A stretch of DNA of 37,411 nucleotides from Macrostomum lignano (Eukaryota), in the NCBI GenBank assembly GCA_002269645.1, contig NIVC01001132.1:1-37411 (forward strand). Reading direction: 5' to 3'. The notes under the pieces were generated by a model, which saw nothing but the letters and a program-made list of their open reading frames with translations, did not search any database and was not told where the DNA came from. The translations under genes and the position numbers were made by a program. Below, piece by piece: positions 1,367-36,578 of this stretch (positions within the stretch are counted from its first letter, which is position 1; every line of letters begins with the position of its first letter).

Positions 1367-4300
1367 ATGGCATACAAAATGGTATTTTCATTGAACGCGA
1401 TAGGTCTACTTCTCTTGGTAGAATACTGTACATGTAAGTAGCTTTCAGCAGAATTATTTGGTTTTAAAATTAATTCTCAATCTCACCTTACTTTAGAAGA
1501 TCACTCTCACCTCTAAATGATCAATCTCGCTTTTAAATGGTCACTCTCATTTCTAGATAATCAATCTCACTTTTAGAAGATCAAAAAAAGTTTTTAAATA
1601 CTAGATCTCACTTCTAGATGATCTATCTCACTTCTAAATGATCAATCTCATTTCTAGATGATCAATCTCATTTTTAGATGATCAATCTCACTTCTAAATA
1701 ATCAATCTCACTTTTGGATGATCAATCTCACTTTGAGATGATTAATGTCACTTCTAAATGATCAATCTCATTTTTAGATAATCAAAATCTCACTTCTAGA
1801 TGAGCAAATTAGATTATCAATCTAATTTCTAGATGATCAATCTCACATTTGAGATGATCTATCTTCTAGATAATCAATCTCACCTCTAAATGATTAATCT
1901 CACTTCTAGATGATCAATATGACTGCTCAACCATATGATTAGTTACACTTCCGAATGCTTTAACTCTCTTTTAGATTCTCAATAGGGATTCTAGCCTTTT
2001 AAAAATATTATTTATACATTACATTTAAATCCGCATAAAAATAAACATTCCAGGTGATTTAAGTGTTCATGAAATGAGAGGAAACTTGTACAAGGGGTAA
2101 CTAAAAACTCAAAGCAGTGATTTGAATTCAGTACAAGTTGATTCAAAATTTCATTTGAGCTGTTTGTTCTGTATTTCAGAGGCGGACGCGCTTCAGAACT
2201 GGACTTCGACGTAAACTCAGTGTACGTCTCGAAAGAACTCCGACCGCTAGTATTATCAGGTGACAGACTGCGTTCGGACATAACAGCGAGCGATGTGGCC
2301 CTCTGCTTTGCCGGCCGTGGCAAGTATGATCAGTTTATCTGTCCAGAAGAAGACGTAGATTCCAATGCAAAGTCCTACTATGACCTGCTGTCAAACGCTG
2401 ATACAAAGACGTATTGTTGCGGTGAGGAGGACGAGCAGTACTGCTGCACAAAAGCCGAGTTCGAGGCGCTGAAGTCAAGTTTGTCCACGGGAGCCATTGC
2501 AGCAATCGTGATCTGCTCTTTACTTGGAGTGGTGGTCATGGGTTTGATCATTTTTTGCGCTTGCAAGTTTTTCTGTCTTGTCAAACAGAGGCCCAACGCT
2601 TCTAGGCCGATGGGGGTGAGTAATAAATGCAGTTCTTTCTTATCATGGCTTAAGGAGATCTGATTTAGTGAAACAAGATAAAAAGTTTATAAAAATTAAA
2701 AATCAGATTGACGTAACAGAGCTGCATGAAAACGCCTCTGTGCAACCCCTGGGCTCTGGCGCTGAAAGGTACACCCACCAGGCGTCTGGATGGTGCGGTA
2801 GCTGAGGTTGCGGCCAAGATCCCATTATCCATAGACAGCGGCGCGGCAGTCACCAATCACATGTGAAAACTCCCACTTGTGAGACGGGACTTCCGGTCTG
2901 TAACAGACGAAGATTCTTGACCCCAACTGTACTAGAAATGGCCGACTAGGGACTCTATGGACAGTCTAGTCAGAGCTGTAAACGAGGACATTTGGATCTT
3001 TTAGCTGGTGAGCGATTCTAGACTACGATTCCCTCCTAAGCCACAGGATTCCAAGGGTGGATAAAACGCCATATTTTTATGTTGATGAGGAAGGGCAGGT
3101 CCCAGAAATCTCTCGTGATGCCCTTCCATAGAAAAGGTCGGCAAACTCCGGCTTGCGGGCGATAAGCGGGCCTCGAAGCCTCTCGAAACTTAAAAAAAAG
3201 CGATCCGGCCCGCTAAAGGTGTGTTTCTCTTCTCGGATTTTTTTCTTCTCTCTCCTCTCCCCTTTCCCTTCTCTCCACACTCCCCTCTTTCCTCTCTCTC
3301 TTCTCTTCCTCTCTCCTCCTCTCTTCTCGTTTATCCTTTCTCTCATCCCATCTCATGCCTCTCTTCTCACATCTCTTATCTTCTATTATTTCTCTTTTTC
3401 ACTCTCATCTGGCCTGCAGACATGAGCTAAAATCCTTATCTGGCACTTGAAGCGAAAAAGTTTGCCATACTCTGTCCTATAGGGACAGGGAAGCTAAAGC
3501 TGAGAATGGGGGTGGCCGCTCGGGCCATTAAAACGGGCTCTTGTTTATAGCCCTGAGACTACGCGTCACACGATCACGATCACGTGATACATGATATTGA
3601 AGGCCGTGACTTGTCCTTGATCTTCGTTACCAAGCAACCCTGGTGATGTCACCCACCAGTGGCGCTGCTATTGGACGAGAAACTGGGGTGGGGTGCAACG
3701 GAGAAAAACTATTCATGATGGAGGATTACGTAACAGACAGGAAAAGCTTGGGGAGATGTGGGGTCATAAAAACTGTCACACGCATGAATGATTTCGAACA
3801 ATAGAAAGGAGGGTGGGGTTGGTGCTCGAGGGAGTGGGTGGGCGATAAGCATGAGTCATTGTGATAACTCATTTTCAATTAGTCATCATGGGGGGGGGGC
3901 AGGAATCACACGGGAAAAGGGAGGGAGCGCAAAAAATAGCGGGGAGGGGCAGGGAACCTGGACGTGTCTGTATCAAGATGGCGATCATTTTAAGGATAAC
4001 CTTTTGCATTGTTGAAAGAGTGAAAATGAATTTCAGAATATTTGCTAATTGGTTCACCAAAGCGCGACGTGATTAACAACCAAATGCCACCGATTAATAA
4101 AAAGTGTGGGAGCAATGCAACGTAGACAACAAAAACTACTTAAGTAGAACGGGAAAGTACGTTTCTTGGAAAGTTTTCTGGAGGCCAGTTTTACGGAGAA
4201 AATACTTTGCATCGATAGCACGTTTTTTGTGACAGTCAGGTACAAATACTCAGCAATATCGAAAAGTCGCCATCACAGCAGATTCGGTCTGTGGTCGCCA

Positions 4301-8178: not shown

Positions 8179-9991
8179 ATGAATCGTCAGAGTGTTGTTA
8201 TTTTGTTTATTTCTTTATTACCATCGGCTGTGATATGTAAGTTTGCACTAATTTATTTAATTTCTTGTCATTAATTTAATGACAAGAAAAGATTCAGTCA
8301 GTGACATATATGATTCAGTTTTCTATGTGTACAGTTTTCTAAACTTACTCCTTGGTGAACATAAAAAAGTCTTGGGTCTTCTTTAACTTTAGGTGGATAA
8401 AATAGTTGCAGTTTTGATAGATTCATAGTTTTGTCTTTGAAAAGGTTTTTGATGGTGCTGATTTCAAATTTTGAGCTTCACTTTTTCGTAGCTTACAACC
8501 AATCACCGAGGCATGGGGAATGGGGGGTGTTAGAGTGGGGAGAATCTTCATGGGGATTGATTTTACGTACCTAAACTTCAATAGAGGCACCAGTGTCTAT
8601 TAAAGATTAGGTAGATATATTCGGAGACTGAGAGAAAGGGTTCTAGGAGCAAATAAGCCATTAAGCATAAATAAAAAATTCAGCAAGTTATCAAACACCC
8701 CTCAATGGAGAAAAATTATAATCCGATCAAAACTAATTGATATCAGTTACCTTCAGAATGGAGACAACCCAGATTAGTAGAAAAAAGTATAGGTAAGCTC
8801 ATAAATAAGTAAAGAATGTACGGCTAGTAGTCACAACAATGAAAGAACGATATCGAATCAAAAAGCGGTCGGAGAGAGGCGGGTGGCGAACCGATGATTC
8901 AGCATTTTTTGAAAACACTAACCTGACGCGGTTACTGTCGCTGGACTATAACAAATTAGAAATGACACTCTTTTTAACGGTGTTAAAATTCGAACCCTCT
9001 AAATCTTTTTTTTTAAATGAACTCGTTGAATTGTGGAAAATATTAACATTTAAAAGTCATGATTCTAAAAAAAGTTCGATGTTTTCAAACATATAAATCT
9101 TTTTTTGCTTTATTACCATTTTGGACAGCCTCTAAGGCTCTAAGAAAGTTTCAGAAAAATCGGAAAATCGGAAGTATGAGTCCAAGTGCCGCTCAACCCT
9201 ATAAGCCTGTTCTTATACTAGTGATTTACTACTTTCTCAAAACTTTAGGCAACACGTCAAGTTCGAGTCAAGCAAAATTTAAAGGGTACGTAGAAGTCAT
9301 TACACAGAAAATCTTTTTAAATCATTTGCTACTCTGCTTATTTACATCGATAATCCACAAGTTTCTTTATAAACTTCAGAGGCGTTCCAGCCAGTGAGTC
9401 GATGCTCAGAAACGACACCGTTTACATTTCCGACAAGATCCGCCACCTGTTAGTAGACCCCAGCACAGGACTGTTCAAGTCAAATGTCAACTTTGAAGTG
9501 ATAACTGTGTGCTTCGCGCGTCGATTTGATCACAGCAGAGGCTCGCGCCAGTACGAAATGTTCGTCTGCCCGGAGCAGTCCGGTGCCACACAAGTCGCTA
9601 CTTACTCCGGCTTGGTTTCCAGGGGCGAGACAAAGTCCTACTGCTGCGGTGCCAAATCGAAACAATGGTGTTGCGATTTTATTGAATTCTCTGACAAACA
9701 CCGAGAAGAACAAAAGCGTTTATCGAAAGTTCTCATAGCAATAATTTGCGTTGGCTCGTTTGCTGTAGTCATCCTTATTGTCCTGATTGTAGCTTGCATT
9801 CACCACAGCTGCAGCCGACAGAATGGAAGAAGTTCATCGCAAGTAAGTAACTAAAACTTAATTTTTTGACACACCCGGCTTTCAGTTTGTCAGCTAGTTA
9901 TTAGTTAGTTAGTTAGTTAGTTATTAGTTAGTTAGTTAGTCAGTTAGTTAGTTAGATAGACATTTAGATAGTTAGTTAGTTAGTTAGTTAT

Positions 9992-10075
<84 letters not shown>

Positions 10076-10076
10076 C

Positions 10077-10136
<60 letters not shown>

Positions 10137-10179
10137 GAGTGAGTGAGTTAGTTAGTTAGTTAGTTAGTTAGTGAGTTAC

Positions 10180-10225
<46 letters not shown>

Positions 10226-10226
10226 C

Positions 10227-10276
<50 letters not shown>

Positions 10277-10693
10277 GAGTGAGTTACTTAGTTAGTTAGT
10301 TAGTTATTTAGTTAGTTAGTTAGTTAGTTAGATAGTTAATTTGGTAGTTAATTTGGTAGTTAGTAAATTATAAATTTCATAGAACTGTATTTATTGCTGC
10401 TAACAATAAATTGCAATGATTGCATCCCCTGTACTCAGGGTTTTCAAAAGCAGGAACAACAACAACATGGAAGCCAGCAGCAGCAGCAGAGTTATCAAGG
10501 GTTGCAGCTGCAGCAGGACTCCCTGTCGCACCAGCAGGCACATCCATATGGAGGCTTCACACAGCCGCAGGTTCGCCCAGAATACCCCCCGATGCACCAG
10601 CAGTCGCCAGAGCAATACCCTCCGCCACCGCCTCCTCCATACATGTATTCTGGAAGCAATGACTCGATCCAGCAAGTGCCACAAAAGCAATAA
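8179..10693 (+). CDS. Gene C: Shisa-like 6-Cys single-pass protein with Gln-rich PPxY tail; join(8179-8236,9249-9285,9380-9842,10439-10693), 270 aa
   Basis: Signal exon MNRQSVVILFISLLPSAVI T|GTAAGT; micro-exon TTTAG|GC..KFKG|GTACGT; exon 3 TVC..VCPEQ..SYCCGAKSKQWCC plus TM (VLIAIICVGSFAVVILIVLIVACI), ending CAA|GTAAGT; last exon after CAG encodes QQ-rich..QYPPPPPPPYMY..*. Total of 813 nt is in frame. Confidence 0.85.
9895..10337. repeat. (TTAG)n microsatellite in intron 3 of gene C
   Basis: Long run of TTAG with occasional TGAG/ATAG variants. Confidence 0.95.
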
Positions 10694-11035: not shown

Positions 11036-11292
11036 AGCATCATTCCCCCTTTAGCATGATTTCCCCTTTGGCATCATTCCCCCTTTTAGCATCATTCCCC
11101 CTTTTAGCATGATTTCCCCTTTGGCATCATTCCCCCTTTTAGCATCATTCCCCCTTTTAGCATCATTCCCCCTTTAGCATCATTCCCCCTTTTAGCATCA
11201 TTCCCCCTTTTAGCATCATTCCCCCTTTAGCATCATTCCCCCTTTTAGCATCATTCCCCATTTAGCATTATTCCCACTCAGCATCATTCCCT
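11036..11292. repeat. 19-20 bp minisatellite (TAGCATCATTCCCCCTTT[T])n
   Basis: Directly visible tandem units. Confidence 0.9.
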
Positions 11293-11564: not shown

Positions 11565-12024
11565 GTGTTTGGCTCAATTGATCAGCTGTGTTTGGCTCAG
11601 TTGATCAGCTGTGTTTGGCTCAATTGATCAGCTGTGTTTGGCTCAGTTGATCAGCTGTGTTTGGCTCAATTGATCAGCTGTGTTTGGCTCAATTGATCAG
11701 CTGTGTTTGGCTCAATTGATCAGCTGTGTTTGGCTCAATTGATCAGCTGTGTTTGGCTCAATTGATCAGCTGTGTTTGGCTCAATTGATCAGCTGTGTTT
11801 GGCTCAATTGATCAGCTGTGTTTGGCTCAATTGATCAGCTGTGTTTGGCTCAATTGATCAGCTGTGTTTGGCTCAATTGATCAGCTGTGTTTGGCTCAAT
11901 TGATCAGCTGTGTTTGGCTCAATTGATCAGCTGTGTTTGGCTCAATTGATCAGCTGTGTTTGGCTCAATTGATCAGCTGTGTTTGGCTCAATTGATCAGC
12001 TGTGTTTGGCTCAATTGATCAGCT
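11565..12024. repeat. Near-perfect 23-bp tandem array x20 (GTGTTTGGCTCAATTGATCAGCT)
   Basis: 460 bp = 20 units with no spacers; units 2 and 4 carry one A>G variant. Confidence 0.95.
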
Positions 12025-12869
12025 GTTTAACTGACTTGGTCAGCTATTTGATTATTTTAAGTCCTGTTATAATTTTCAAAATTTCGGTTACTTTTACTAA
12101 CGACTTCAAAGCAATGTACACAACAAGATTTATAGTTTTATAGATTTATAACAATTGAAATTCTTCTTTGCTAAACGAAAAGCTCTATGAATATCAATAG
12201 AGCTAAAAAAGACAAAAACTATCAAAAGATGAATATAGGATTTGTCTCCTATCAAAAAGCGTTAATAGTTTTTGTGCTGTAACAGCAAATCCCTAGCTGT
12301 CTCCGTAAATTATTATTCAAAAAGCTGCCGCCTAAAATTTGCCAAAAAACGTAGTTTCCCGTCCGGTGTCCTTCGTAGTCCTTGGTTCCATATTTACATA
12401 AGAATTCGTGCACCTTTCTCTTCAACTAATCTATCTAAGGTACCCGTCGGCGTTCCTCGCTAGAAAACATAATTGTTATTTACGATGAGTAAATTTTTAC
12501 TGAATTTTGCCATCGAATTTAGGTTATATTACGAAAAATGGTAAGGTACCAATTAACCTGACGCTTATATGCAAAGCAGCATAGCAGTGGAAATTCGTGA
12601 GAAGAGTAAGCTTGAAAAAGGTAAACTAACGAAAGCGAATAGCTTAGGGCTTGTGTTATACAAATTTTTAGTCGAAAAGCAGAACTCCCGCTGGGCTTTC
12701 GCTTGCAAATCTGTTTTCTATGGTAAAAGTTGTCCTGTTGAAATTTTTGACTTCTAATCAGCCTTGAATTCCCAATTTCTAAGCGTAACTCAGCCGTTCT
12801 TCATTCGGACTAAAAAGATCCAAGCAACAAGATCGCAGGTACACAACAGCAAGCAAAACTTTTACGAGT

Positions 12870-15800
12870 ATGAAGAATCGGCAAATTACGCATTTACTGG
12901 CAGTTATCACACTGCTCATTGTCGGACTTTTGACGGGTGAGTTTTTCACCATATTTAAACACATTTTAAATGCAAACTGTAGTTGTTCACACAGAATATA
13001 TCAGCTACTGTCGTTCAAGCACAAAGCCGATCAGATCACAATCTTTTTGACTCAACCTATCATTCCTGATTTTTTAATTAAGGTCTTTAAGGCGTTGAGC
13101 TTTTAAGGTGAAGAACGGAAGATTTATTGCTAATTTTATTTTGTTCAAACCAAAATCTCTGCATAGCTTCAAACGGAGCACAGAGCCCTAGGCCTACGAA
13201 TAGGACTTTTAAGCTTGAGGAAACTCCTAATGTGAATTACTTTATTGGTCATGGAGAGCTGAGTAGCAAGCACAACTATAAGCACACTGTTAAGAAAAAT
13301 GGACTTTAAATAGAACTTTTGACAGATTTATCCAACCTATCTGTACCATAAAACGCTTCCTTTTACAATGTCCGCATCTCAATACTTTGTTTTCAAGTAC
13401 GAGCTATTTATGATCAACATTCACTAAATTAAGTGATGTTGATGTTGATGCTAAACGAGCCACTTTACCTGATATTTTGATCAGAACTTGAGGTTTTTCA
13501 AAGCAACTACTGCTAAATTCAACTTCTCATGCATTTTAGGCGCCGAGTCGCGTGATTATAAAGGGTAAGATCAGACAGAGGCTTTAGTAGCTACTTATAC
13601 CTTTCTTGCTCTTAAATAAGCGAATACTGCATTTAACAATGCATCACCACCCTTGCTTCATTCAAGATCCAAAAGAGGTTCCGCAACGCTGGTAAAGAGA
13701 CCTAAATTAACACAAGTCCCAAAGAATCTCTGGCGGTATATGAGCAGAGATGGAGCAAATTTCAAATATGAAGAAGTCACACTGTGCGAAATGCCCTCGT
13801 TATATGAAGATTTTCTGCACGTCTGCCCAGATAAAATTGATTATTTGGCCAACGTTTCTTTCACCGATGTAAACTTCAGAAACACCACGAAATCGTTCTG
13901 TTGCAGTTCCCGTTACGTGCACGGCGCGTGCTGCAACAGTAGCGAATTTAAGGAATATATGTCCTACTGCCTTAAGAGAGACATACTACTAATTGGCCTT
14001 TTTTGGTGGTTACCAAACTTTGTACTACTTCTATTTTCTATTTACTACATTTGTGTAAGTGAGTTCAAATCATGTTTATTTATATTTGAATCAAGCTAGA
14101 CATAGAATATGATAGATAGAATGGCATACATTTTAGTAAATCGGTTTTTTAGACACATTTTTATGCAATATTTATAGCTTAAGTTTAGATAATGTAATGC
14201 CACTTAACGAAAGCAGTTTACCTGCTAATTATTTTTATCTTAATCCAGGGATTCGGATACCTTTGTATCCGCTGTATTTATCCTTATGCGGAGGAGAAGT
14301 ATATTGACAAAGCACGCATCCAATTCGGCTCGTGTTGTTTTGCCATACTGATGTCGATTTTACTTTTGCCGATTCTCTGCATTAGCTGCCGTTTAATCGC
14401 GCTATGTGTCAACGACAGGCCCGATGTCAGTTCTGACATGCGCCAATGTTGGAAAAGCCTCTGGTCTTGTAATTCGAACAACTCAGCACCAGCACCATCA
14501 GCATCAACTACCTCTGCTGATACCAACAACTCAGCACCAGCACCACCAGCACAAACTACCTCTGCTGATACCAACAACTCAGCACCAGCACCACCAGCAC
14601 AAACTACCTCTGCTGATACCAACAACTCAGCACCAGCACCACCAGCACAAACTACCTCTGCTGATACCAACAACTCAGCACCAGCACCACCAGCACAAAC
14701 TACCTCTGCTGATACCAACAACTCAGCACCAGCACCACCAGCACAAACTACCTCTGCTGATACCAACTGTCATGACTTATGGGGTGGGGCCGCGTGGTAG
14801 GGGTGGAGCTTGTTTAGTAAGCCTAGCTAGCAGTACGTACGGTAATGTACATGCGCGGGCCACCGTGCCCTTGGCCTATAAAATATACAGAGCGTGGAGG
14901 GTTTTGCCTCAACTGAGTTTACTCCAGAATAAGCGAATTGACTTCATTACAATTGGCGACGAGAATGGCTTCAGTTGGACAACTAGAGCCTTACGAGGAA
15001 GGCAAAGATTGGGACGCCTATCAAGAGCGAATGGACTCTTACATGCTTGCAAACGGCATAGAAGGCGACGACAAGAAGAAGGCAGTGTTTCTGACATTGA
15101 TTGGCGAACGATGCTACGCAGTCCTGCGGGATCTCTGCAGTCCGACCAAGCCAACAGATCTGCAATACAGCGCCCTCACCGAGCACCTTCAAAAGTACTT
15201 CAAACCGAAGAAGCCAGTAATCGCTGAACGGTTCAAGTTCTACAAGCGAGCACAAAAGGACGGAGAGACGGCTGCTCAATTTCTGGCTGCGCTGCGGAAT
15301 CTGGCCGATTCGTGCGAGTTCGGGGGGTTTCGAGAAGAAGCTCTCCGAGACTGTTTCGTCTGCGGTCTTCGGGACCAGCGGACCCAGCAGCGACTCCTGA
15401 TGGAGGAGAAGCTCACGCTGGATGCGGCCAAGAAAATTGCCCTCGCGGCGGAGATTGCTAAGTCGGAAACGGAGCAGTGGAAATCGAGCTCAGACGTCAG
15501 CTCAGTCCAGCAGGTAGCGCCAGACTCGAAGGCGTGCTACAGGTGCGGATTGAAAGGCCACCTGTCGGCAGCCTGCCACTTCAGGACCGCAAAGTGCCAC
15601 AACTGCGGGAAAGTTGGACACCTGCAGAAAGTTTGCCGCTCAGCCAAGAAAGCCTCCAGAACAACGAAAGCCGGACGGCCAGAGAACGGACCAGCGCACG
15701 CAATGCAAACGGAAGAGGAGGAGGAAGCAGCAACTGGCTGGATTTCGCAAGTCACTGCATCGGCCAAGAAGATCAGCGTAAGCCTGCTGGTGAATGACCA

Positions 15801-18800
15801 GCCCCTCACCATGCAGCTGGACACCGGTGCCTGCGTCAGCCTCGTACCGGAGTCGGTGTGGAAGCAGCTCGGCCGACCTCCGCTGACACCAACACGCCTG
15901 CGACTCCGGACCTGGACGGGCGAGCCAATACAAGTCAAGGGAACAGCCGAGGTCAGGGTCAACTACGACGGAAGACAGCATGATAAGCTGCCGCTGGTGG
16001 TCACCAGTCAGACCGGAGCCTGCCCATTGCTAGGACGCAATTGGCTGGAAAAAGTGCGACTCAACTGGACTCAGTTGTTTGCCAACCAGATCAGCCAGGC
16101 GCCGGCGCAGAACAGCGGGCCTCTCGACCAGATGCTGGAGGAGTTCGCTGATGTTTTCGACGAGAGCCTGGGGCAGTTGAAGGATCAGACAGTCGCACTG
16201 AGACTTAAAAGTGACGCACAGCCTCGATTCTGCAAGGCCAGACCCGTGCCATTCGCAGTGCGGGACAAGCTTGAGCTCGAGCTCCAGGACATGCTCAACA
16301 AAGGGATCATCCGCCCGGTGACCTACAGTGAGTGGGCTACGCCAGTGGTTCCGGTACTCAAGGCGGACGGCTCAGTCCGACTGTGCGGCGACTATAAACT
16401 GACGTTGAACCCTCAGCTCCACATCGACCAGTACCCGCTGCCTACGCCTGAAGAGCTTTACGAGCAGATGGGACGGGGTCAGCTGTTCTCAAAACTCGAT
16501 CTGTCACAATGTTATCTTCAGTTTCCACTCGACGAAGAGAGCTGCAAGCTGACGACCATCAACACGCATAAAGGGCTTTTCGAGTACCTCCGGTTGCCAT
16601 TTGGCGTCAGTTCGGCTCCTGCGATTTGCCAGAGGCTGATGGAAACACTTTTGAAGGGCGTGCCGGGAGTCTGTTGTCGCATTGATGACATCCTGGTCTC
16701 CGGTCCGTCAATGAGTGAGCACCTAGCAGCGCTTCGAGAGGTACTGACCAGGCTGAGAGCGGCGGGCTTGCGGCTGAAGCGAATCAAGTGCAAATTTCTG
16801 CAAGAAGAAGTCGAATACCTGGGCTCGTTGCTGAGCAAGGACGGAGTCAAGAAGCTGCCTCAGAAGGTGGAAGCAATAGTCAACAGCCCGAAGCCAGCGA
16901 CAGTATCAGAGCTGCGATCATTCTTGGGCCTCGCAAACTACTATGCTCGACATGTCAAGGACTTCTCCACGATCGCTGCTCCTCTGTATCAACTGTTGAG
17001 GAAGGAGACGGACTGGCGGTGGGCTGAGACGGAGGACCGAGCCTGGGACCATCTTAAGCAAGAACTGAGTTCGGACAGCGTGCTGACGCATTTCAACGAG
17101 CAGCTTCCAGTGGTGGTGGCCGCGGATGCTTCATCGGTCGGCATCGGCGCGGTGCTGTCCCACACGATGGAGGACGGCTCGGAACGGCCGGTGACTTTTG
17201 CTTCAAGGACGCTGTCAGCAGCGGAGCGAAATTACTCGCAAATTGAGAAAGAAGCCCTCGCCATCGTGTTCGCCATCAAGCGGTTCCACCAGTACCTGTT
17301 CGGCCGGAGCTTCACGATAATTACGGATCATCAGCCGTTGACGACGATTTTCGGACCGAAGGTTGGCATCTCGCCGACTGCAGCAGGGCGACTTCAGAGA
17401 TGGGCACTGCTGCTGTCAGGGTACAGCTACAGCATCCGGTTCCGCAAGACTGCTCAGCACAGCAACGCAGACGGCCTGTCTCGCTTGCCCCTGCAGATGA
17501 AGGACGACAGCCCAGACGACGACGATCGGGTCTGTCAGCTGACGGGCGAGTTTCCATTGACGGCGGCGGATGTAGCGGCAGCAACGAAGCGGGATGACGA
17601 GCTCCGAGATGTTCTCCGGATGATAATGACTGGCTGGCCAGAGTCGGTTCCGCCGCGGCTCGAGCCCTACTTTCGTCGTCGACTAGAACTACGAGCGTAA
17701 GCGTGGAAGACGGCTGCGTGATCTGGGGAACTCGCGTGCTGGTTCCGGAAGCGTTGCGACCTGGAGTTCTGCGCGAGTTACACGTGGAACATTTCGGCAT
17801 GGCCCGGATGAAAAGTGTCGCCAGAACCTTCGTCTGGTGGCCAGGAATGGATTCTGACATCGAGTCGGTTGCCAGCAGCTGCCAAGCCTGCCAATCCGTT
17901 AAGCTGCATCCGGTGCTGGCTCCACTGCACCCCTGGGTGTGGCCAGACCAGCCCTGGGACCGCATCCACGTTGACTTTGCCGGGCCGGTTTGAGGCCGCC
18001 AGTTTCTCCTCGTAGTCGACGCGCACTCAAAGTGGCCGCATGTGGAGGCCGTGTCAACACTCGAATCGGCCGAGCTGGTTCGCAAGCTGCGAGTGTTGTT
18101 TGCACAATGGGGTCTGCCGAGAGAACTGGTATCGGACAACGGTCCAGCATTCATCAGTCAAGGATTTAGCGATTTCTGCAAAGCAAATGGAATTCGCCAC
18201 ATAAGAAGCAGTCCATATCACGCCAAGACCAACGGACTGGTGGAACGGCTGGTGAAGTCGTTCAAGATGGCCATGGAGGCGTCACGGAGCAGTCAGCCGG
18301 ACCTCGACATCCGCCTGTGCAACTGGCTGCTGGGCTACCGAGCTAGCCCGCACCCAACGACCGGTCGGACACCAGAGGAGCTTTTCCTGAAGCGGCAGCT
18401 CCGGACTCGAATGGACCTGCTGCGGCCGTCAGCCCGGGATCGAGTACTGCGGGAGCAATCTGCCCAGAAACGACAGCACGACCGGCGGTCGCGGGAGCTG
18501 CCGGAGGAGCCGTGGTCGGAGGCCTGGGCCAGGGACTACCGGCCTAATGCGGCGGCCTGGCAACCAGCAAAAGTTCTCGAGCAGACTGGGCCGCTGAGCT
18601 TCCGAGTCGAAACGAGCGACGGCCTGACCTGGCGCCGTCATGCCGACCAACTGCGGGGCCGGCGAGTTGAGAGCGACAAACCTGACGGTCTGGCAGCCGG
18701 GACCGAGCCAGCTGAAGCTGCGGACTCGACCGGGACCGGCGCGGAGCACCCGGAGCCGGAGCCGCCAGACGCGCCCTGCGGACTGCAGCCTGCACGCCGG

Positions 18801-19357
18801 CGACGGCCACCTGAGAAGCTGACCTACTCGAAACTCGGGAGCTGTGATTGATAGGAAGCGGACTTCTTCTGAGAGGGGAAAAGTGTCATGACTTATGGGG
18901 TGGGGCCGCGTGGTAGGGGTGGAGCTTGTTTAGTAAGCCTAGCTAGCAGTACGTACGGTAATGTACATGCGCGGGCCACCGTGCCCTTGGCCTATAAAAT
19001 ATACAGAGCGTGGAGGGTTTTGCCTCAACTGAGTTTACTCCAGAATAAGCGAATTGACTTCATTACACCAACAACTCAGCACCAGCACCACCAGCACAAA
19101 CTACCTCTGCTGATACCAACAACTCAGCACCAGCACCACCAGCACAAACTACCTCTGCTGATACCAACAACTCAGCACCAGCACCACCAGCACAAACTAC
19201 CTCTGCTGATACCAAAAACTCAGCACCAGCACCACCAGCATCAACTACCTCTGCTGATACCAACAACTCAGCACCAGCACCACCAGCACGAACTACCTCT
19301 GCTGATACCAACAACTAAGCAACTGTGGTGGCAACTACACCAGCTACTAACAAATAA
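12870..19357 (+). CDS. Gene D: Shisa-like 6-Cys protein with two predicted TMs and a 16-aa repeat tail. Exons 12870-12936, 13540-13564, 13667-14054, 14249 onward; last exon interrupted by Gypsy at 14767/14768. Current frame stops at 14800 in the LTR (343 aa); orphaned 3' part 19068-19357
   Basis: Signal MKNRQITHLLAVITLLIVGLLT G|GTGAGT; micro-exon AESRDYKG|GTAAGA; exon 3 TLC..VCPDK..SFCC..ACC plus TM, ending TGT|GTAAGT; exon 4 after TAATCCAG encodes GFGYLCIRC..FGSCCFAILMSILLLPILCISC.., then (NNSAPAPPAQTTSADT)n. Colinear with gene G. Confidence 0.85.
14477..14767 (+). repeat. 48-bp coding tandem repeat, 6 units upstream of the insertion
   Basis: Encodes NNSAPAP(S/P)A(S/Q)TTSADT x6; continues for 5 more units at 19070-19309. 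Confidence 0.95.
14768..14951 (+). repeat. Gypsy 5' LTR (TATAAAA box at 14877-14883)
   Basis: Direct repeat of 18884-19067 with TG..CA ends. Confidence 0.95.
14954..14968 (+). promoter_or_regulatory. Primer-binding site, probably tRNA-Ser type, overlapping the gag ATG (14965)
   Basis: TGGCGACGAGAATGG begins 2 nt after the LTR and resembles the complement of tRNA-Ser(GCU) 3' ends (..CTCGTCGCCA). The host tRNA set was not checked. Confidence 0.7.
14965..18851 (+). CDS. gag-pol: Gypsy gag-pol polyprotein, broken by an 8-nt insertion/stop at about 17692-17700 and an in-frame TGA at 17991-17993
   Basis: Two CCHC knuckles (CYRCGLKGHLSAAC, CHNCGKVGHLQKVC), protease LDTGA, RT (KLDLSQCY, RIDDILV), RNase H (ADASSVGIG, YSQIEKE, TDHQPL), integrase HHCC, DFAGP / SDNG / ERLV, and a GPY/F-like GPLSF. 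Confidence 0.95.
18884..19067 (+). repeat. Gypsy 3' LTR
   Basis: Preceded by the polypurine tract; matches the 5' LTR. Confidence 0.95.
19070..19309 (+). repeat. 48-bp coding repeat, 5 further units of gene D downstream of the insertion
   Basis: Same unit as 14477-14767, followed by AAC AAC TAA. Confidence 0.9.
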
Positions 19358-20485: not shown

Positions 20486-21191
20486 ATGCTTAACATAATC
20501 GGGACGCTGAACTGCCGCACTCTCAAGGCCACATGGCGGAGAGGGCTGCTGGCGAGGCTAGCGCTCGACCTCAGCTGTGATGTCATCGCACTACAGGAGG
20601 TGTCTATCAGAGCCGACCCCGGACTTCACTGTGAGGACCTAGGCGCCGGTTGGACACTCTGGTACACCTCAGCGGATGAGCGAGGCCGTGGAGGAGTTGG
20701 AGCGCTGATCGGACCGAGGCTGCAGCAGAGCTGTCGCTGCGTCTCCCTGTCTTCTCGGCTGCTTCGGGTCGACGTCCGGCTTAACGGCCGGAACGCCCGC
20801 CTGTTCTGCGCGTACGCGCCGCCTGCTACCCGCTCCGATGAGGCTCAGGCCTTCTTCGAGCAACTCTCGATGCGGGTGGAGGAGATGGCGCAACGTGACA
20901 CAGTGGTCATTCTCGGAGACCTGAACGCAGTTCTGCGTAGGTCCGAGCGATCGCTGTTCGTGACAGCGCGCGAGAACGGCAACACCGGAGCGCTAGAGGA
21001 CTTCCTGGAGAGACAGGACATGGTGTCGGCCAACACCAGATTCCGCAAGTCACCGGGCAGGCTCACGACCTTCGTGGGCTGCAAGCGGAGGCGGCGGAAC
21101 GCGCGCGGCCGGAACGCTACGCGGAGGCTGGCACAGCTCGACCACGTGCTTGTGCGCTTTCGTGAGCGCCGCCGCGTCACCAACTGCCGCA
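20486..21191 (+). mobile_element. 3'-truncated non-LTR retrotransposon, APE-type endonuclease domain
   Basis: Motifs TLNCRTL, IALQEV, GRGGVG, CAYAP, GDLNA and LDHVLV. Similarity ends abruptly at a CCATAGAC motif (21192). Confidence 0.9.
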
Positions 21192-22131
21192 CCATAGACA
21201 TAGACACTATTACCATTGTCTATTACCATAGACACTTGCATTTCGGCACGCATTAGGCGACTTCCAAAGCATTCTTGCACGCTGGATCAAAAAGAATTGT
21301 CTGAATTGAATTTCTGCTAGTTTTTTCAGAGCTGGACTTTGTTCAAAGTTGAACGTGAAAGGTGTATTAAGAGTTAATATTGAATAGTGTGACGTTGTCG
21401 GTTTTAAGTGGTCCCGCAAAAGGGCCGTTGGACTACAATTTCCCTACAATTTCTCATTTAAATTTTCCAATCTCGTATTCTCACGTTTACTTGTAGTAGC
21501 GCGCAACGAATTTGTATTAATTGCTAAATCACTGCGTACTTTGTAATCTTTGCGTACGCCTGTAGGATCTCGCGCGATCAATAATTTCAGTTTCTTGTTT
21601 TTATCTCGCCAGTCAATGGAAACTCTCCGCATACATTATGTTAACCCTTCTGCGCTCCTTTATTAACCCCCGCCTGGCGGCGGCCTGGGGGGTTTTTCAC
21701 GTTCTCTCCTCACTTCTAGGCGTCTGGCTCTTGTTTTCCTTCTCCTCCTGGCTGCCTTGAGCCTCCTTATCTCTCGCCACGGCTCCTCTGTCTGGGCCAG
21801 CCTGTTTACACACTGTTACTCCACTGTGTACTGCCACGGGCTAACGCCCAATCTCGCCACTACTTATCTGCCTGTCTACTTGCTACTCACTGCCTCCACT
21901 GTGCTCATCGCCATCACTTACCACGTTGCGTCGCCATTGCATCCTTCGTCTGCTACTTGACTTCATATTCTAATCACATCAACCATTGTTGCAGCCGCCA
22001 GTGCCCCAGAACACTATAAGTTTTGTATTGACATTAACCAACTCTAATTTTTTGAAAATTTGGAGATATATTTTAGCTCTAATATTTCACAAGAACATAC
22101 TCAAATCAGTATCCTTATATACTCGTATATA

Positions 22132-22901
22132 CACTCAGCAACATTGAAACGTTTCCACCCTCGAGCCAGCCGTTTATGTAAATAATAAACGCCGTTTAAT
22201 TCACATTCTGTGGTTAGAATGTCTGAGGCTGCGTTTAATGGTCTCGAGGCGAGCGTAGCGAGCCGAGGACCATTGATTGCAGCCGAGGATATTCTAACCA
22301 TAGACTATGATGAATTAAACGGCCTTTATCATATATTAAATTCGATTGCTCCTGATTTCGAGGAGATTATATGATATAATATCCTAGTTTTTGTTAAAAA
22401 TTACCACAGACAACACATTCCCGGCTCAGAATAGTACAATTTTTTAACGATTAAATAAGCAATCGTATTTTATATTAAGAGCTTCAAAACTGGTTTTTGT
22501 CGCCAGACTTGTGCCATAGACGTTTGATGATTTCGTCAACACGCACTTGGGCCAAAGACAAAAACTTGGGTCATAGACGCCAGACAGGTCGAAGGAAACA
22601 GTCACACGGAGCAGACAGCAGCAGCTTACAGGAGTCTAAAATCCACCGCAACCGAACGCAATGGTTCGCCAAATGACCGACCTGGAACGAGCGCGCGCCA
22701 TTGGCATGCTGGACGCTGGGATGTCCATCCGAGCTTTTGCTCGCCAAATTGGGCGGTCGCACACAGCAATCTGCAAACTGCAGATCAAGTGCAGAGAAAC
22801 GGGCAGCGTGTAGCTGGCCACGCGCGGCCGGCGGCTCAATATGAGCAGTACAACTAGGAGGGCGGACCGGCGATTGCTGCGAATACCAATTTTGCTGAGT
22901 G
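22132..22901 (+). mobile_element. Internally deleted Tc1/mariner DNA transposon
   Basis: TA|CACTCAGCAA ... TTGCTGAGTG|TA (10-bp TIRs, TA TSD); contains a transposase N-terminal fragment. Confidence 0.85.
22661..22882 (+). pseudogene. Tc1 transposase N-terminal HTH fragment with an internal stop
   Basis: MVRQMTDLERARAIGMLDAGMSIRAFARQIGRSHTAICKL..RETGSV*..GRR..TTRRADRRLLR is a typical Tc1 paired-like HTH; no DDE domain present. Confidence 0.85.
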
Positions 22902-23129
22902 TATATGTATTAAAGCAGCTTCGTTAACAAGATTGCGGGGCCAGCAGGCCGACAAGTTTATGCTGTGTATAGCATCGAATGGGAAAGCTGAATGTGCATT
23001 TGAAAAGCTGAATAAAGTTATAGGTGTTCTTTGTTGCTTTGCGGCGCACTTTTTGTTTTCTGCCGAGGTGTCACTTGAATTGACTAAAAATTTTCACTTT
23101 TCAATCGCGTTGTCTTTTCATTTAATTCT

Positions 23130-25322
23130 TATTTTATACCTATAAAATTAACAAATAAATTACTTGATTTGCGACATCACAGATGAGCTTGCAAGTAAAG
23201 TGCAGGTGGATAGTTGTATTTTATTTTGCCGTTAAGTAATAAATAAATTAAAGTTAAATTCATGATACGTTATAAAAAATCAATATTAGGTTCGGTGATT
23301 TCAACTTTTTTTACATTTTTTTCGGAGCAATGAGTCGACTTTCTCCAAATAGTTTTTCAGCTGTACGTTCAATACTGAATTTTAGTATATATGTAAAGTT
23401 TGACCATCTGTAAAATTAGGTTTTAGCGGCTCTGCAGTCTATGGCGAACTGTTGTTATCAGTAGAAGCTGTTGAAGTCGCTGCTGGGGGTGGGATGTTGG
23501 CATTGGGAGAGGCTGTTGGCAACTGCTGATGCTATTCTAATGCTATAAATACTTCTGGAACGCACAATACTATTTTACTTACCTCCAGTTTCACTTCTTG
23601 TCTGGCAACACGGATTGCGCCAACAATTCCTTAGATTCCTTGTTAATGATCCTTTCCAAAATTGAGAAGTATTCCCATAGCAATCGGCAATACGTTCATT
23701 TTTCGCATCCGGATCGCTACATCAGCATATAAGTAGCTGCATAAAGAAAGGCAATTAGTTGATTTATATTCACTTTGTTAAGTATTTACACCAGATAAGA
23801 ACAGTAGCTAGGTACAGGTACAGGTATATGGCACTAGTAATGCTATATATAACCCAGAATAGTCAACAATTCTGAAAGCTATTGCCCTGATCTTATGACG
23901 CAAGTTAAGGATCTAGAATTCTTGCCATAGTATAAATATTCGGTCTGAAATCTAAATGCCTCTACCCCTACGAGAATTCAAACCCAAACATGAGATTCGC
24001 GTTGACTTACACCACACAGTCGGCATAAAACCGTGAGCATCAAAATGACAAAGGGTAAAACTACTGACACAACAAGTAATATGTAGCGTGACCGACTATC
24101 GTCACTCATTAATTTCAACGCAAATTGGACATCAGCAGTGCAGCACGAAGACTCGCAGCAGTGGGATCTCGTGCTGGCTTTAGAGCTCACTTCAGAGAAG
24201 GGATCGTTGACCAAATAGTCAACCTTATCAGGGCAGGCCTGTAGCTCTGAATTCTTTAGTTCGCACACTGTGACTTCGTCATATTTAAAATTGATTCCGT
24301 CTCTGTCCATATCCTGCCTAAGACTACTGGACACCTTTACTTTGTCACCTTTGAGCAGCTCTGCTGAACCTCTTTTGCCTCTAAAGTGAAACGAGATAAT
24401 GATAGTTAAATAATACAGTATTGTCTAATTTAAAAATAAAGGTAGTGACTAATAAACACATTGCAAGTCTTACCCTTTATAATCTTTCGAACAGACGCCG
24501 CCTAAAATTGATCAGAAGTTATACGTATAAGCATAGGAAAATACTTTTCGAAGAATTTCTTGGCGTTTTATATTGCACTGCTGGTAACTCTACATGTACG
24601 TAGTTCCTACGTAAAAGTTAGCTGGAAATTTCAATGCAGCAGAATCGTAATAGCATGAATTGGCGACAAGGCCTACTTGAAAATTTGGTCAGCATCTAAA
24701 ATCCTTGGTTTTCGTTGGTCCAATTCCATGCACCAGAAGAAAAGGAATGGCGGGAGTTTAGTGTAAAGAGGATTTTTAAACACTTGCTGACCAAATCTTG
24801 AATGAAGATCTGAGGATCTATTGAAGTTCAGGCCAGTAAATGGAGAGACTGTTGGCCCCTATGACCCATAATGACGTGGTAAACTACTCTGCAGTACGAG
24901 TCTGGTTTGGCCTCTGTCCCAACCTGCTGCCATTAAAGACGCCCCGACGGGACCCTTGGAGCAGTTCCTGAGCGATGCCAAAAGGCAGGTGCATGAGCAA
25001 CACCTCTGGAGCTGCCTGCCGCCGATTTTACAAGGCAAAGTGGGCCATGGGCCCGCGGGCAGCGGAAGCTTCCCAATCTGGGCCCAAAGCCAGCTGAAGT
25101 CCCTGTCCAGGACAAGAGCTACAACCGAAAGGGTGGACAGGCCACCTGCTGAAGACTCCCCCGAACCCTGGACCTTTTGTGGAAGTTTTCTCTGATTTGG
25201 TACCTTTCAAAACTCCTGCGTGGTGTCGCAAACTTAAATAATCACCACGATTAGTTTCCAGACTTGTTTTAGTGTAGGTTTATGAAATAGACAAATACGT
25301 AGTATTTGCGGTTTTAATACTA
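23130..25322. repeat. Direct segmental duplication (3' part of gene E), paired with about 29820-31730 (gene F)
   Basis: Exon 3 proteins differ at about 6 of 123 residues; introns and flanks align up to the start of the Bel/Pao LTR at about 25325. Confidence 0.9.
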
Positions 25323-25551
25323 TATATCGATCGGTGAGTTTTCAGTCAGCCCCCCCCCCTCGGTCTCGTTAGAGCTTTTTAGCCCTCGCCCTTCTTACCC
25401 ATTTTCTTCTTATCTATTCTCTACCCCCCCTCTCTCAACCACGCAAATAAATATACTGCTGGAGGAGCCTTTTCATCCTAACGTTGTTTTTCAAGTTGTT
25501 ATTGTCAACGTATTCACTGGCCAGTGTTATTTCTTCAGTTATTTTTCTACA

Positions 25552-25569
25552 TGGCGCCCGAACAGGGAC
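25552..25569 (+). promoter_or_regulatory. tRNA-Lys(UUU) primer-binding site
   Basis: TGGCGCCCGAACAGGGAC, the canonical 18-nt tRNA-Lys3 PBS, lies immediately after the LTR end ..TCTACA. Confidence 0.9.
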
Positions 25570-28376: not shown

Positions 28377-28440
28377 CCCAACCCCGATTTTTACGCTTAC
28401 ACCTTTTGCCAGACTCCGTGAACCTAAAAAAATTAACGAA

Positions 28441-29663
<1,223 letters not shown>

Positions 29664-33673: not shown

Positions 33674-36578
33674 TTAGTTGTTAGCAGCTGGCGTAGTTGC
33701 GACCACTGGTGCTGAGATGTTGGTATTAGCAGAGGTAGTTGGTGCTGGTGGTGGAGGTGCTGAGTTGTTGTTGTCAGCAGATGTAGTTGGTGCTGGTGGT
33801 GGAGGTGCTGAGTTGTTGGTATCAGCAGAGGTAGTTTGTGCTGGTGGTGGAGGTGCTGAGTTGTTGGTGTCAGCAGATGTAGTTGGTGCTGGTGGTGGAG
33901 GTGCTGAGTTGTTGGTGTCAGCAGATGTAGTTTGTGCTGGTGGTGGAGGTGCTGAGTTGTTGGTATCAGCAGAGGTAGTTTGTGCTGGTGGTGGAGGTGC
34001 TGAGTTGTTGGTATCAGCAGATGTAGTTTGTGCTGAGTTGTTGGTACAACAAGAGCAGAGGCATTTCCAACAGTTGTCCATTCCATTACTGACATCGAGG
34101 GCGCCGTTGGCACATATCAGTAATAAACAGTATCCAACGCAGAACATCGGACAAAATAAAATAACCACAAGCATGCAAAACAAACACGAGCCGTATCGGT
34201 TGCGCATGGATTCAATATTTTCCTCTCGCTCATTACGATAAGGATATGCGCAGCGGACACAAAGGTATCCGAATCCCTGGATGAAGATAGAAACAATTAG
34301 CAGGTAAATTGCTTTTGTTAAGTGTTACATTATCTAAACTTGTGTCTAAAAAACCGATTTACTAAAACGGCCATTGCATCTATCATATTCTACGAGCGTA
34401 TGTCTAGCTTGATTCAAATATAAATAAACATTGATTCGAACTCACTTACACATACGAAATAAAAAAAAAATAGAAGTAGTACAAAGTTTGGTAACCACCA
34501 AAAAATTGCAATTAGTGCTATGTCTCTCTTTAAAATATAGGACAGATCTTCCTTAAATTCGCTACTGTTGCAGCACCCGTAACTGCAACAGAATGATTTC
34601 GTGCTGCTGGGGATGTTCACATCAGAGAAAGAAACGTTGACCAAAAAATCGATCTTTTCTGGGCAGGCAAGCAGCTCATCTCTGTTAATGTATATATTGC
34701 ACAGTGTGACTTCTTCATATTTGAAATTTGCTCCATCTCTGTTCATATACCGCTTGAGATCATTTGACACTTTTGTTTTAGGACTTTTTAGCAGCGCTGC
34801 GGAACCTCTTTTGTATCTTGAATGAAGCAAGGGTGGTGATGCATTGTTAACTGCAGTATTCGCTTACTTAAGAGTAGAAAGACCATGAAGTGTATTTCAA
34901 ATACACACATTTTTTCTTTGTCTGGATCCCCAAAAATATTCAAGTGCCAATTTCCATGAAAATCCAGAACACGGGCGAAGTTTTCCGCTCTATTTGATGA
35001 AGGAACTTCGAGAATCATGAAAAATCGGCATCGTCGAGATATTAAACGATTCTCCTAGGGGAGTCTGGTGGCAAAAACCACCAACATTGGCAAAATTTTT
35101 CTGCTCGAAAAATCTCATTATGAAACCACGTGGGAGTAACAAACTATGCATATCAGTCGTAGAGGCCTTTGTTCTCAGCACTCTAGGCAACAGGGTCCCC
35201 TTCATCACCGTCTGGAGCATCGGCGGCGACCGTCGGAAAAATCACGATGTTGGGGGAGCCAGCTCGTCAGGGCCGCGTGGTGGTATCCGTTGAAAGTCCG
35301 GAAGGTCGCCTGCATGTCTACAGGTTAACCTAGAGGGTCGCTATCGTCCATTTAATTCACCGATTAAGTCTACTGACTGAATGCTGCATGCAGAAGAGGA
35401 TTCTTCCATTTCAGTTTTCAGCCGTCTCTGAGATGCCGATCAGGTGCTTTTGTCGAAGGTCTCGATGGTCGCCGCCGATGCTCCAGACGGTGATAAAGAG
35501 GACCCTGGTGCCTTGAGTGCTGAGAACAAAGGCCTCTACGATGGATGGACCCAGATCATTGAGCCAATATGGATTCACTATGAAGGCTTATACAGTGTAG
35601 TGTGGGTCGTCCTTGCCACCAGTGTCTTCGAAAAGAATCGTTGAATATCTCGACGATGCTGACGTCCAATGACTTTGAAAGTTAGTTCGTCAGAAAGGGC
35701 GGGAAATTTTGATTTATAAGGTGGACTTTTAGGAAAATGGGTAATTCGGTTTGCGAGCTATCGTGAAATGGGTCGTGTGTATTTGTAATACACCCCGTGG
35801 TCTTTTCCCATGGGGGAAAATAGCGTGGGTATTTCTACTGTTAAGAGCAACAAAGGTATGAGTATAAGTGGCTACTAAAGCCTCTGACTGGTCTTACCCT
35901 TTATAATCACGCGACTCGGCGCCTAAAATGCATGAGAAGTTGAATTTAGCAGTAGTAGCTTTGAAAAACCTCAAATTCTGATAAAAAATATCAGGTAAAA
36001 TGGCTCGTTTGGCATCAACATCAACATCACTTAATTTAGTGAATGTTGATCATAAATAGCTCGTACTTGAAAACAAAGTATTGAGATGCGGACATTATAA
36101 AAGGAAGCGTTTTATGGTACATATAGGTTGGATAAATCTGTCAAAAGTTCTATTTAAAGTCCATTTTTCTTAACAGTGCGCTTATAGTTGTGCTTGCTTC
36201 TCAGCTCTCCATGACCAATAAAGTAATTCACATTAGGAGTTTCCTCAAGCTTAAAAGTCCTATTCCTTTGCTCCGTTTGAAGCTATGCAGAGATTTTGGT
36301 TTGAACAAAATAAAATTAGCAATAAATCTTCCGTTCTTCACCTTAAAAGCTCAACGCCTTAAAGACCTTAATAAAAAATCTGGAATGATAGGTTGAGTCA
36401 AAAAGATTGTGATCTGATCGGCTTTGTGCTTGAACGACAGTAGCTGATATATTCTGTGTGAACAACTACAGTTCGCATTTAAAATGTGTTTAAATATGGT
36501 GAAAAACTCACCCGTCAAAAGTCCGACAATGAGCAGTGTGATAACTGCCAGTAAATGCGTAATTTGCCAATTCTTCAT
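33674..36578 (-). CDS. Gene G: intact Shisa-like 6-Cys protein with two predicted TMs and a mucin-like repeat tail; complement join(36578-36512,35922-35898,34816-34450,34276-33674), 353 aa
   Basis: All junctions are GT-AG with phases 1/2/0, and the 1062 nt are open. Signal MKNWQITHLLAVITLLIVGLLTG, Cys domain TLC..ACPEK..SFCCSYGCC, TM1, loop, TM2 (SCLFCMLVVILFCPMFCVGYCLLLIC), then (NNSAPPPPAxTTSADT)n. Confidence 0.88.
33722..34042 (-). repeat. 48-bp coding repeat of gene G (one 33-bp partial plus 6 full units)
   Basis: Visible in ORF 33674..34207. Confidence 0.92.
34872..35840. mobile_element. 969-bp non-autonomous DNA transposon with TTAA TSD in intron 2 of gene G
   Basis: TTAA at 34868-34871 and 35841-35844. 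TIRs GAGTAGAAAGACC and the reverse complement CAGTAGAAATACC match at 11/13. The empty site with a single TTAA is present in paralogue D (about 13608-13611). Confidence 0.85.

Follow-up and report, generated by a model that had tools for sequence, protein, structure and literature searches.

Membrane-tethered mucins of the MUC1 type carry a Pro/Thr/Ser-rich (PTS) domain with a variable number of tandem repeats (VNTR) at the membrane; its length varies between alleles, and it lies N-terminal to a single transmembrane (TM) segment. The polymorphic mucins of Schistosoma mansoni (SmPoMucs) are reportedly secreted and are not known to contain a TM hairpin. Shisa and STMC6 proteins are single-pass proteins with six cysteines and Pro-rich cytosolic tails bearing a PPxY motif (PMC10531659; PMC6125347). 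The window analyzed here, a stretch of 37,411 nt, appears to be a whole contig of Macrostomum lignano (assembly GCA_002269645.1, Mlig_3_7), and its GT-AG introns, microsatellites and retroelements are eukaryotic features. Seven related six-cysteine, Shisa-like membrane-protein genes (A-G) were clustered on it. Two of them, the inverted paralogues D (12870-19357, plus strand) and G (36578-33674, minus strand), encoded a signal peptide, a C..CP..CC..CC N-terminal domain and a TM segment (TM1) close behind it, as Shisa-like and STMC6 proteins do, and paralogue C and the gene A product (P0007) of the same cluster carried the canonical Pro-rich PPxY tail. However, D and G differed from these proteins in a second hydrophobic span (TM2) and the lack of PPxY. 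Furthermore, their tail was rich in Thr, Ser, Asn, Ala and Pro, acidic, and composed of tandem repeats with sequons, and it was predicted to be exoplasmic instead of cytosolic. The probability of this exoplasmic, N-out/C-out arrangement was estimated at roughly 0.55.

The sequence of D from 12068 to 14767 aligned with that of G from 37410 to 33767. Both genes had four exons: exon 1 encoded the signal peptide, exon 2 was a micro-exon of 25 nt, exon 3 held the six-Cys ectodomain and TM1, and exon 4, the last, encoded a charged loop, then a Cys-rich segment of strong hydrophobicity and finally 48-bp (16-aa) repeats in frame, NNSAP(A/P)PPAxTTSADT. Every splice site in the two models was canonical. 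Exon 1 of D (12870..12936) encoded the signal peptide MKNRQITHLLAVITLLIVGLLT(G) with a GES H of 1.91, ended at the donor G/GTGAGT, and gave the same N-terminus as the GenBank model P0001, the counterpart of D described below. The micro-exon (13540..13564, AESRDYKG), flanked by ttttag and GTAAGA and also present in P0001, put exons 1 and 3 back in frame. Exon 3 (13667..14054; acceptor caag/A, donor TGT/GTAAGT) encoded the C..CP..CC..CC ectodomain with the sequons NVS, NTT and NSS, as well as most of TM1 (residues 137-160, 13983-14054). The part of exon 4 ahead of the repeats (14249..14476, acceptor atccag/GGATTC) was translated as GFGYLCIRCIYPYAEEKYIDKARIQFGSCCFAILMSILLLPILCISCRLIALCVNDRPDVSSDMRQCWKSLWSCNS, followed by the 16-aa units. 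It comprised the end of TM1 (14249-14269), the loop RCIYPYAEEKYIDKARIQF (14270-14326), TM2 GSCCFAILMSILLLPILCISCRLIALCV (14327-14410) and a Cys-bearing juxtamembrane stretch (14411-14476).

The exons of G were located on the minus strand. Exon 1 (36512..36578) encoded the signal peptide MKNWQITHLLAVITLLIVGLLT, exon 2 (35898..35922) was identical in sequence to the micro-exon of D, and exon 3 (34450..34816) contained the six-Cys ectodomain and TM1 (34521-34450, resuming at 34276-34256). Exon 4 spanned 34276-33674 and was translated as GFGYLCVRCAYPYRNEREENIESMRNRYGSCLFCMLVVILFCPMFCVGYCLLLICANGALDVSNGMDNCWKCLCSCCT, followed by the units; its part ahead of the repeats (34043..34276) held the loop RCAYPYRNEREENIESMRNRY, TM2 GSCLFCMLVVILFCPMFCVGYCLLLI (34192-34115) and a Cys-rich juxtamembrane stretch. 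The initial annotation had placed a loop (YPYAEEKYIDKAR in D, YPYRNEREENIESMR in G), a Cys-rich hydrophobic stretch and 16-aa units behind TM1, and all three were read exactly in this way. In addition, a basic motif, (D)YKG(G/S/Y)(K/V/I)R(G), was conserved family-wide at the exon 2/3 junction, just past the signal peptide (13540-13700; 35922-34790; P0005, P0007 and P0008); it might be a dibasic propeptide-processing site. Intron 2 of G was about 980 bp longer than that of D. The extra DNA (34878-35805) was an element resembling a foldback element or a miniature inverted-repeat transposable element, with long imperfect terminal inverted repeats (arms of 31-121 nt, 72-87 % complementary).

The topology was predicted from hydropathy: segments were scored by GES in a TopPred-style scan, as Kyte-Doolittle averages and by sums on the Hessa scale. 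On all three scales, D, G and P0001 showed three strong hydrophobic segments: a signal-like N-terminal segment (residues 5-25, with a K/R n-region and T-G-A preceding a charged stretch), TM1 (residues 137-167 of D) and TM2 (residues 187-214 of D and 182-207 of G). Both TM1 and TM2 were classed as "certain" in the three proteins, with GES H values of 1.99-2.26 and 2.34-2.53, respectively. TM2 was 26-28 residues long and scored at least as high as TM1 (H = 2.34 and 2.53). With its 31 residues, TM1 could not accommodate two spans; homology with C, E and F placed its end near the exon 3 boundary, ahead of a Cys-rich juxtamembrane stretch. By hydropathy, a signal peptide and two "certain" TM segments were thus obtained for D and G. 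Paralogue C gave a signal segment and a single TM by hydropathy, and the second hydrophobic segment was confined to D, G and P0001. The charge distribution in G was four K/R in the loop window versus none in the 15 residues past TM2. An AlphaFold2 model of P0001, built from a 7-row alignment, showed two helices, 122-170 and 176-214, interrupted at PYAEE, and left the tail disordered, at a predicted local distance difference test (pLDDT) score of about 30-35; its mean pLDDT of 51.5 was too low for fold comparison. There were six or seven Cys in the ectodomain of D and G, which also bore two or three sequons. Because a signal peptide and a presumably luminal, sequon-bearing six-Cys ectodomain are followed by two TM segments, the tail of D and G would lie on the exoplasmic side.

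According to the mechanism proposed here, D and G would be lineage-specific paralogues within the Shisa-like (six-cysteine) gene cluster of M. lignano. A signal peptide, probably cleavable, would lead the Cys-rich N-terminal domain into the lumen of the endoplasmic reticulum, TM1 would serve as a stop-transfer sequence, and the charged, Cys-bearing loop of 20-30 residues would be kept in the cytosol. The extra hydrophobic segment of exon 4 would then form the second arm of an inserted helical hairpin, and the insertion of this hairpin would translocate the C-terminal tail. The leader peptidase of Escherichia coli is an N-out/C-out hairpin of this kind. The tail itself would be an intrinsically disordered tandem array rich in Pro, Thr, Ser, Ala and Asn, with almost no Lys/Arg, one N-x-S sequon per unit, and TTS clusters as candidates for O-glycosylation. 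On its way through the secretory pathway, it could become a short glycosylated mucin-like stalk at the cell surface or in a lumen, and its length might be altered when the 48-bp unit slips during replication or recombines unequally. The luminal or extracellular tail proposed in the initial annotation, and with it a topology new for Shisa-like proteins, was thus supported in part. The two hydrophobic segments, the K/R-poor PTS tail and the departure from the single TM and the PPxY tail stood, and the extracellular location is what hydropathy would predict.

The repeat tail was analyzed with Tandem Repeats Finder, which detected three period-48 arrays without indels, at 14477-14767 (6.1 copies, 98 % matches, score 561), 19067-19321 (5.3 copies) and 33708-34035 (6.8 copies), with 94-98 % matches across the arrays. 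The proximal part of the D array (14477..14767) contained six units of 48 bp and the first codon of unit 7. In the distal part (19073..19357), unit 7 was completed, and units 8-11 and then a degenerate terminal unit followed; the third codon of the latter was TAA (19316-19318), ahead of the ancestral stop at 19355-19357. When the flanks were rejoined without the insert lying between them (..14767 + 19073..), exactly 11 units were obtained. The G tail (33674..34042, minus strand) consisted of a 33-nt (11-aa) partial unit, six 48-nt units and the degenerate terminal unit NISAPVVATTPAANN, and it ended with TAA (33676-33674). These numbers agreed with the counts first proposed, 11 units in D without the insertion and about 6.7 in G. 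The spliced proteins would comprise 414 aa for D with the insert removed and 353 aa for G.

Eight of the 11 D units were identical at the DNA level, and the consensus units of D and G differed at three of 48 positions, two of them synonymous and one giving an Ala/Pro exchange. An N-x-S/T sequon was found in 10 of the 11 D units (unit 10 read KNS), and eight sequons were found in the G tail, so that the earlier statement of a sequon in nearly every unit was confirmed. The tails of D and G were acidic and contained 49-54 % Pro+Thr+Ser (18-24 % Pro), 20-25 % Ala and 13-16 % Asn. Lys/Arg were limited to 0-2 per 122-178 residues, and neither Tyr nor PPxY was present in the two tails. Moreover, the repeat number varied from copy to copy, with 11 units in D of this contig, five in the sister contig, three in P0001 and about 6.7 in G. 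Pro/Thr/Ser-rich tandem repeats and copy-number variation, two properties of mucin-like (PTS) domains, were both found in the D/G tail; of a third, an exoplasmic location with dense O-/N-glycosylation, the location is predicted from the number of hydrophobic segments. "Mucin-like" fairly describes the composition and VNTR behaviour of the tail.

The D array was interrupted by a Ty3/gypsy-type long terminal repeat (LTR) retrotransposon of 4,300 bp (14768..19067, plus strand), which was identified by its LTRs, target-site duplication and pol domain order. Its LTRs (14768-14951 and 18884-19067) were 184 bp long, 100 % identical and bounded by TG..CA, and the 5-bp target-site duplication CCAAC was found at 14763-14767 and 19068-19072. 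In a piecewise Pfam scan, the domains were arranged as gag-asp_protease, RVT_1, RT_RNaseH, Integrase_H2C2 and rve, which is the Ty3/gypsy order. The integrase region was spread over separate open reading frames (ORFs), and of its core domain no more than the C-terminal half was matched, indicating that pol of the insert was not intact. The corresponding site in the sister contig was empty. Together with the identical LTRs, this result indicated a very recent insertion. As it stands, D reads TSADTN-CHDLWGGAAW up to a stop at 14798-14800 within the 5' LTR; thus, the insertion cut the tail after six units and added CHDLWGGAAW. Furthermore, the third codon of the terminal unit (19316-19318) was TAA (Asn-Asn-stop) here and TTA (NNL, Leu) in the sister contig, and the last 13 aa would therefore be lost in this D copy even without the insertion.

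The sister contig, NIVC01001769.1 of the same assembly, was collinear with this contig at about 98 % identity, and its D copy had five units. M. lignano is neopolyploid, with about 180 Mb of duplicated blocks of non-repetitive sequence sharing at least 95 % identity (PMC5730564), so the two contigs would represent either duplicate copies or haplotypes within a single inbred line. The GenBank counterpart of D is BOX15_Mlig031209g1 (P0001), an independent, RNA-seq-based model with exon 4 and three units, which differed from the four-exon D model at only two residues outside the repeats (NTT vs NST; LIALCV vs LIPLCV). The GenBank annotation of the assembly was based on a genome-guided, RNA-seq-based transcriptome, from which transcripts overlapping annotated repeats were removed (PMC5730564). 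The origin of P0001 in this annotation supports the inclusion of exon 4 in the mRNA. Therefore, the skipping of exon 4, named in the initial annotation as a result that would speak against it, was not seen for the sister copy. The removal of repeat-overlapping transcripts may explain the missing annotation of the interrupted D. P0001 had three units compared with the five encoded by its own contig (11466-11879), as the annotated coding sequence omits 96 nt within the array. This gap could reflect either a transcript of another copy or a collapse in short-read assembly, and the count of three units may be such a transcript-assembly collapse. The ORFs of G and of D in the sister contig were intact. 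When expression data were sought, no mention of Mlig031209 or Mlig026036 was found in a full-text search of the literature or in the supplements of a few M. lignano papers.

The two contigs also differed elsewhere. The block 21801-30307, in which gene E lies together with an integrase-like ORF (25484-26365) and a (TGTC)n array, was absent from the sister contig, which had one E/F-type gene. Either a tandem duplication in this contig or a collapse in the sister contig would account for it. A 256-aa ORF (20486-21256) just upstream of this block had the look of a long interspersed nuclear element-type endonuclease, judged by sequence alone.

A cytosolic tail was considered the main alternative, although an unlikely one. 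In this case, TM2 would be a membrane-embedded, palmitoylated or re-entrant segment, and the repeats would be an amplified Pro-rich adaptor tail offering polyproline ligands (APAPPA/APPPPA) to SH3, WW or EVH1-type partners. Several observations weigh against the exoplasmic tail, and some of them fit this alternative. Both hydrophobic segments were Cys-rich with a central Pro, and TM2 of D contained an Arg, so that TM2 could be a non-spanning, palmitoylated or re-entrant segment. The positive-inside signal in D was weak (three K/R before TM2 versus two after), and the AlphaFold2 model was poor. Moreover, C, P0007 and P0008 had one TM and cytosolic Pro-rich tails, with PPxY in C (PPPPPPPYMY) and P0007 (PPPMY). 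E and F likewise had one TM and no TM2-like ORF; about 470 bp downstream of their exon 3, each carried one stretch with homology to the 48-bp unit and the D 3' flank, at about 67 % over some 370 bp (23533-23340 in E and 30240-30050 in F, both on the minus strand). This single copy indicates that a terminal segment already present was amplified into the array, and its position after a single TM is the main argument for a cytosolic ancestral tail. In addition, with eight identical D units, the conservation of the sequon among units is better attributed to very recent amplification than to selection. Finally, G had no annotated model, and D was interrupted in this contig.

On the other hand, TM2 has 26-28 residues and is no weaker than TM1 on the three scales, the D and G tails lack PPxY, and they are nearly free of K/R with one sequon per unit. 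Furthermore, the E copy would read PPPAATSTASTDNNSSP before a stop in the frame of D, but the older E and F models, P0003 and P0004, read the unit-like sequence in two other frames. An origin of the loop/TM2-coding DNA of D by exonisation of the E/F intron was also considered, and no significant homology was obtained (best E = 0.14). Overall, the exoplasmic tail was considered more probable than the cytosolic alternative.

The relationship of D and G to the Shisa-like proteins was evaluated by profile comparison. Residues C41, C54-P55, C79-C80 and C89-C90 did not vary among C, D, E, F and G, and a profile of D/E/F/G matched that of the A/B/C type (hhalign 97.3 %, E = 2e-11) with all six Cys aligned. 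Compared with the description of Shisa-like/STMC6 proteins, D and G had the signal peptide and the six-Cys (C..CP..CC..CC) extracellular domain. In place of a single TM, D, G and P0001 had the two segments classed by hydropathy, and in place of a PPxY cytoplasmic tail, D and G had a tail with the Pro content given above. No Pfam family was assigned to D, G or P0001, and the matches to Expansin_C, Frag1 and TMEM52 fell below the cut-off and were regarded as noise. Shisa_N (PF13908) matched A, B, C, P0007 and P0008 at 15.8-20.8 bits, all under the 22-bit cut-off. P0001 and P0002 are named "CX domain-containing protein" in UniRef, and current Pfam gave no CX match for either. The Shisa-like identity given earlier thus depends on the Cys pattern, the profile link to A/B/C and the recurrent sub-threshold Shisa_N matches of those paralogues, D and G having no Pfam match. 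D and G are best regarded as a structural variant related to the Shisa-like superfamily, in which their membership is likely, though sub-threshold.

When 1.84 billion representative proteins were searched exhaustively by profile, nine matches were returned, eight of which could be assigned to M. lignano through their database names or because they were identical to genes of this contig. The ninth, P0008, is a single-pass protein with a Pro-rich tail and an unconfirmed origin. Among the nine matches, the two-TM-plus-repeat architecture was found only in P0001, the TM2 columns lying outside the 140-position profile. A homologue search with the full G protein, swamped by low-complexity candidates, returned only P0001, and the protein databases did not contain G itself. 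When the tail was left out of the query, or when the paralogue profile was used, nothing but M. lignano fragments was gained. In a family-profile sequence search of the PDB, the only match was to HKT transporters, which was rejected as a spurious TM similarity. So far, the architecture of D and G appears to be restricted to Macrostomum and lineage-specific.

The divergence of D and G was compared over 12937-14476 versus 36511-34049. Unexpectedly, the exons were the more diverged parts: intron 1 (588 nt) was 98.0 % identical and intron 3 was 94.5 % identical, whereas the identity was 82 % in exon 3 and 71.6 % in the loop/TM2 part of exon 4, corresponding to 28 % nucleotide divergence. By the Nei-Gojobori method, the synonymous divergence (dS) was about 0.25-0.28 in both exons, and the nonsynonymous divergence (dN) rose from 0.19 in exon 3 to 0.42 in exon 4. 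The dN/dS was 0.98 overall and 1.67 in the loop/TM2 part, the latter not significantly above 1 (Fisher p = 0.21). The divergence at synonymous sites was about eight-fold that of the introns (Fisher p about 1e-12). Moreover, the divergence was patchy, with perfectly conserved blocks between the patches. The four exonic indels (3, 3, 15 and 6 nt) were all multiples of three, but the intronic ones were not. The Cys positions, the TM1 core WWLPNFVLLLF and the hydrophobicity of TM2 were kept between D and G. Exons more diverged than introns, together with in-frame indels, argue against pseudogene decay.

A similar exon-focused pattern was observed for E versus F (24336-24277 and 23676-23380 vs 31033-30974 and about 30370-30080), which were 96-100 % identical save two patches of 74-88 % in the 5' part of exon 3 and the presumed last-exon region. 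Gene conversion from E/F was examined as the source of the exon 3 patches in D and G. With E as the outgroup, 20 D-unique and 21 G-unique substitutions were counted, no E-like tracts were seen, and this source was rejected. The data point to diversifying selection and/or micro-conversion from paralogues outside this contig. It is improbable that D and G are merely decaying duplicates, with a neutrally drifting exonised intron as the extra segment, a minisatellite as the array and an architecture without function: the retrotransposon and premature TAA in D, the dN/dS values, the absence of G from the databases and the lack of relatives beyond M. lignano and P0008 among the proteins searched would fit decay, but the intact ORFs of G and the sister D, the in-frame indels, the retained six Cys, TM1 core and TM2 hydrophobicity, and the RNA-seq-derived model of the sister copy do not, and neutral decay predicts equal divergence of exons and introns.

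The remaining genes of the cluster were gene A (72-383, minus strand), gene B (2220-2663, plus strand), gene C (about 9.3-10.7 kb, plus strand; BOX15_Mlig026036g1, P0002), gene E (exon 3 at 24334-23978, minus strand) and gene F (exon 3 at 31031-30675, minus strand). In the ectodomain exon of gene B, the six Cys were accompanied by one TM, and gene B also gave sub-threshold Pfam matches to CYYR1 and SNORC. In addition, several simple repeats were observed: (AGTT)n of about 120 copies within the last intron of gene C (9884-10364), (TGTC)n of about 307 copies at 28441-29663, an 18-bp repeat at 11036-11291, and a 23-bp satellite of 20 copies at 11565-12026, which was visibly longer in the sister contig.

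Compared with MUC1-type mucins, D and G likewise combine a Pro/Thr/Ser-rich VNTR domain with the membrane, and its length varies. However, their PTS domain is C-terminal and would need an N-out/C-out hairpin to get outside, and the array is very short, with 3-11 units of 16 aa. The SmPoMucs resemble D and G as a flatworm-specific multigene family with variable-number tandem repeats, frequent recombination, signs of unusual diversification, and a connection with glycosylation status (PMC2576457). They differ in that their repeats are short, N-terminal and each on its own exon, and in the absence of a six-Cys Shisa-like domain. A more far-reaching proposal is that D and G, and also E and F, form a hypervariable surface-glycoprotein system. 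In such a system, the ectodomain, loop and TM2 would outpace the introns through diversifying selection and/or micro-conversion from unseen paralogues, and an exoplasmic mucin-like tail of variable length would take part in recognition under conflict, such as mating, sperm-egg interaction in a hermaphrodite, or encounters with microbes. This system would then be to a free-living worm what the polymorphic mucins are to schistosomes. This function is a speculative and quite unlikely one, suggested by the sequence pattern.

If the predicted topology is false, D and G would be a fast-evolving orphan paralogue with a coding minisatellite. If it is true, one added exon segment would have turned an adaptor scaffold that crosses the membrane once and keeps its tail in the cytosol into a hairpin displaying a glycosylated repeat stalk, which would be a clean natural case of topology change through the gain of a TM, and the Shisa-like fold would be employed beyond its usual role as a WW-domain adaptor. 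The significance would be greater if the exon-focused hyperdivergence belongs to a recognition system. The cluster unites VNTR variation, exon-focused hyperdivergence and a fresh retrotransposon insertion within the array. Transgenesis works in M. lignano, and the locus is therefore tractable for studying the diversification of young membrane-protein genes.

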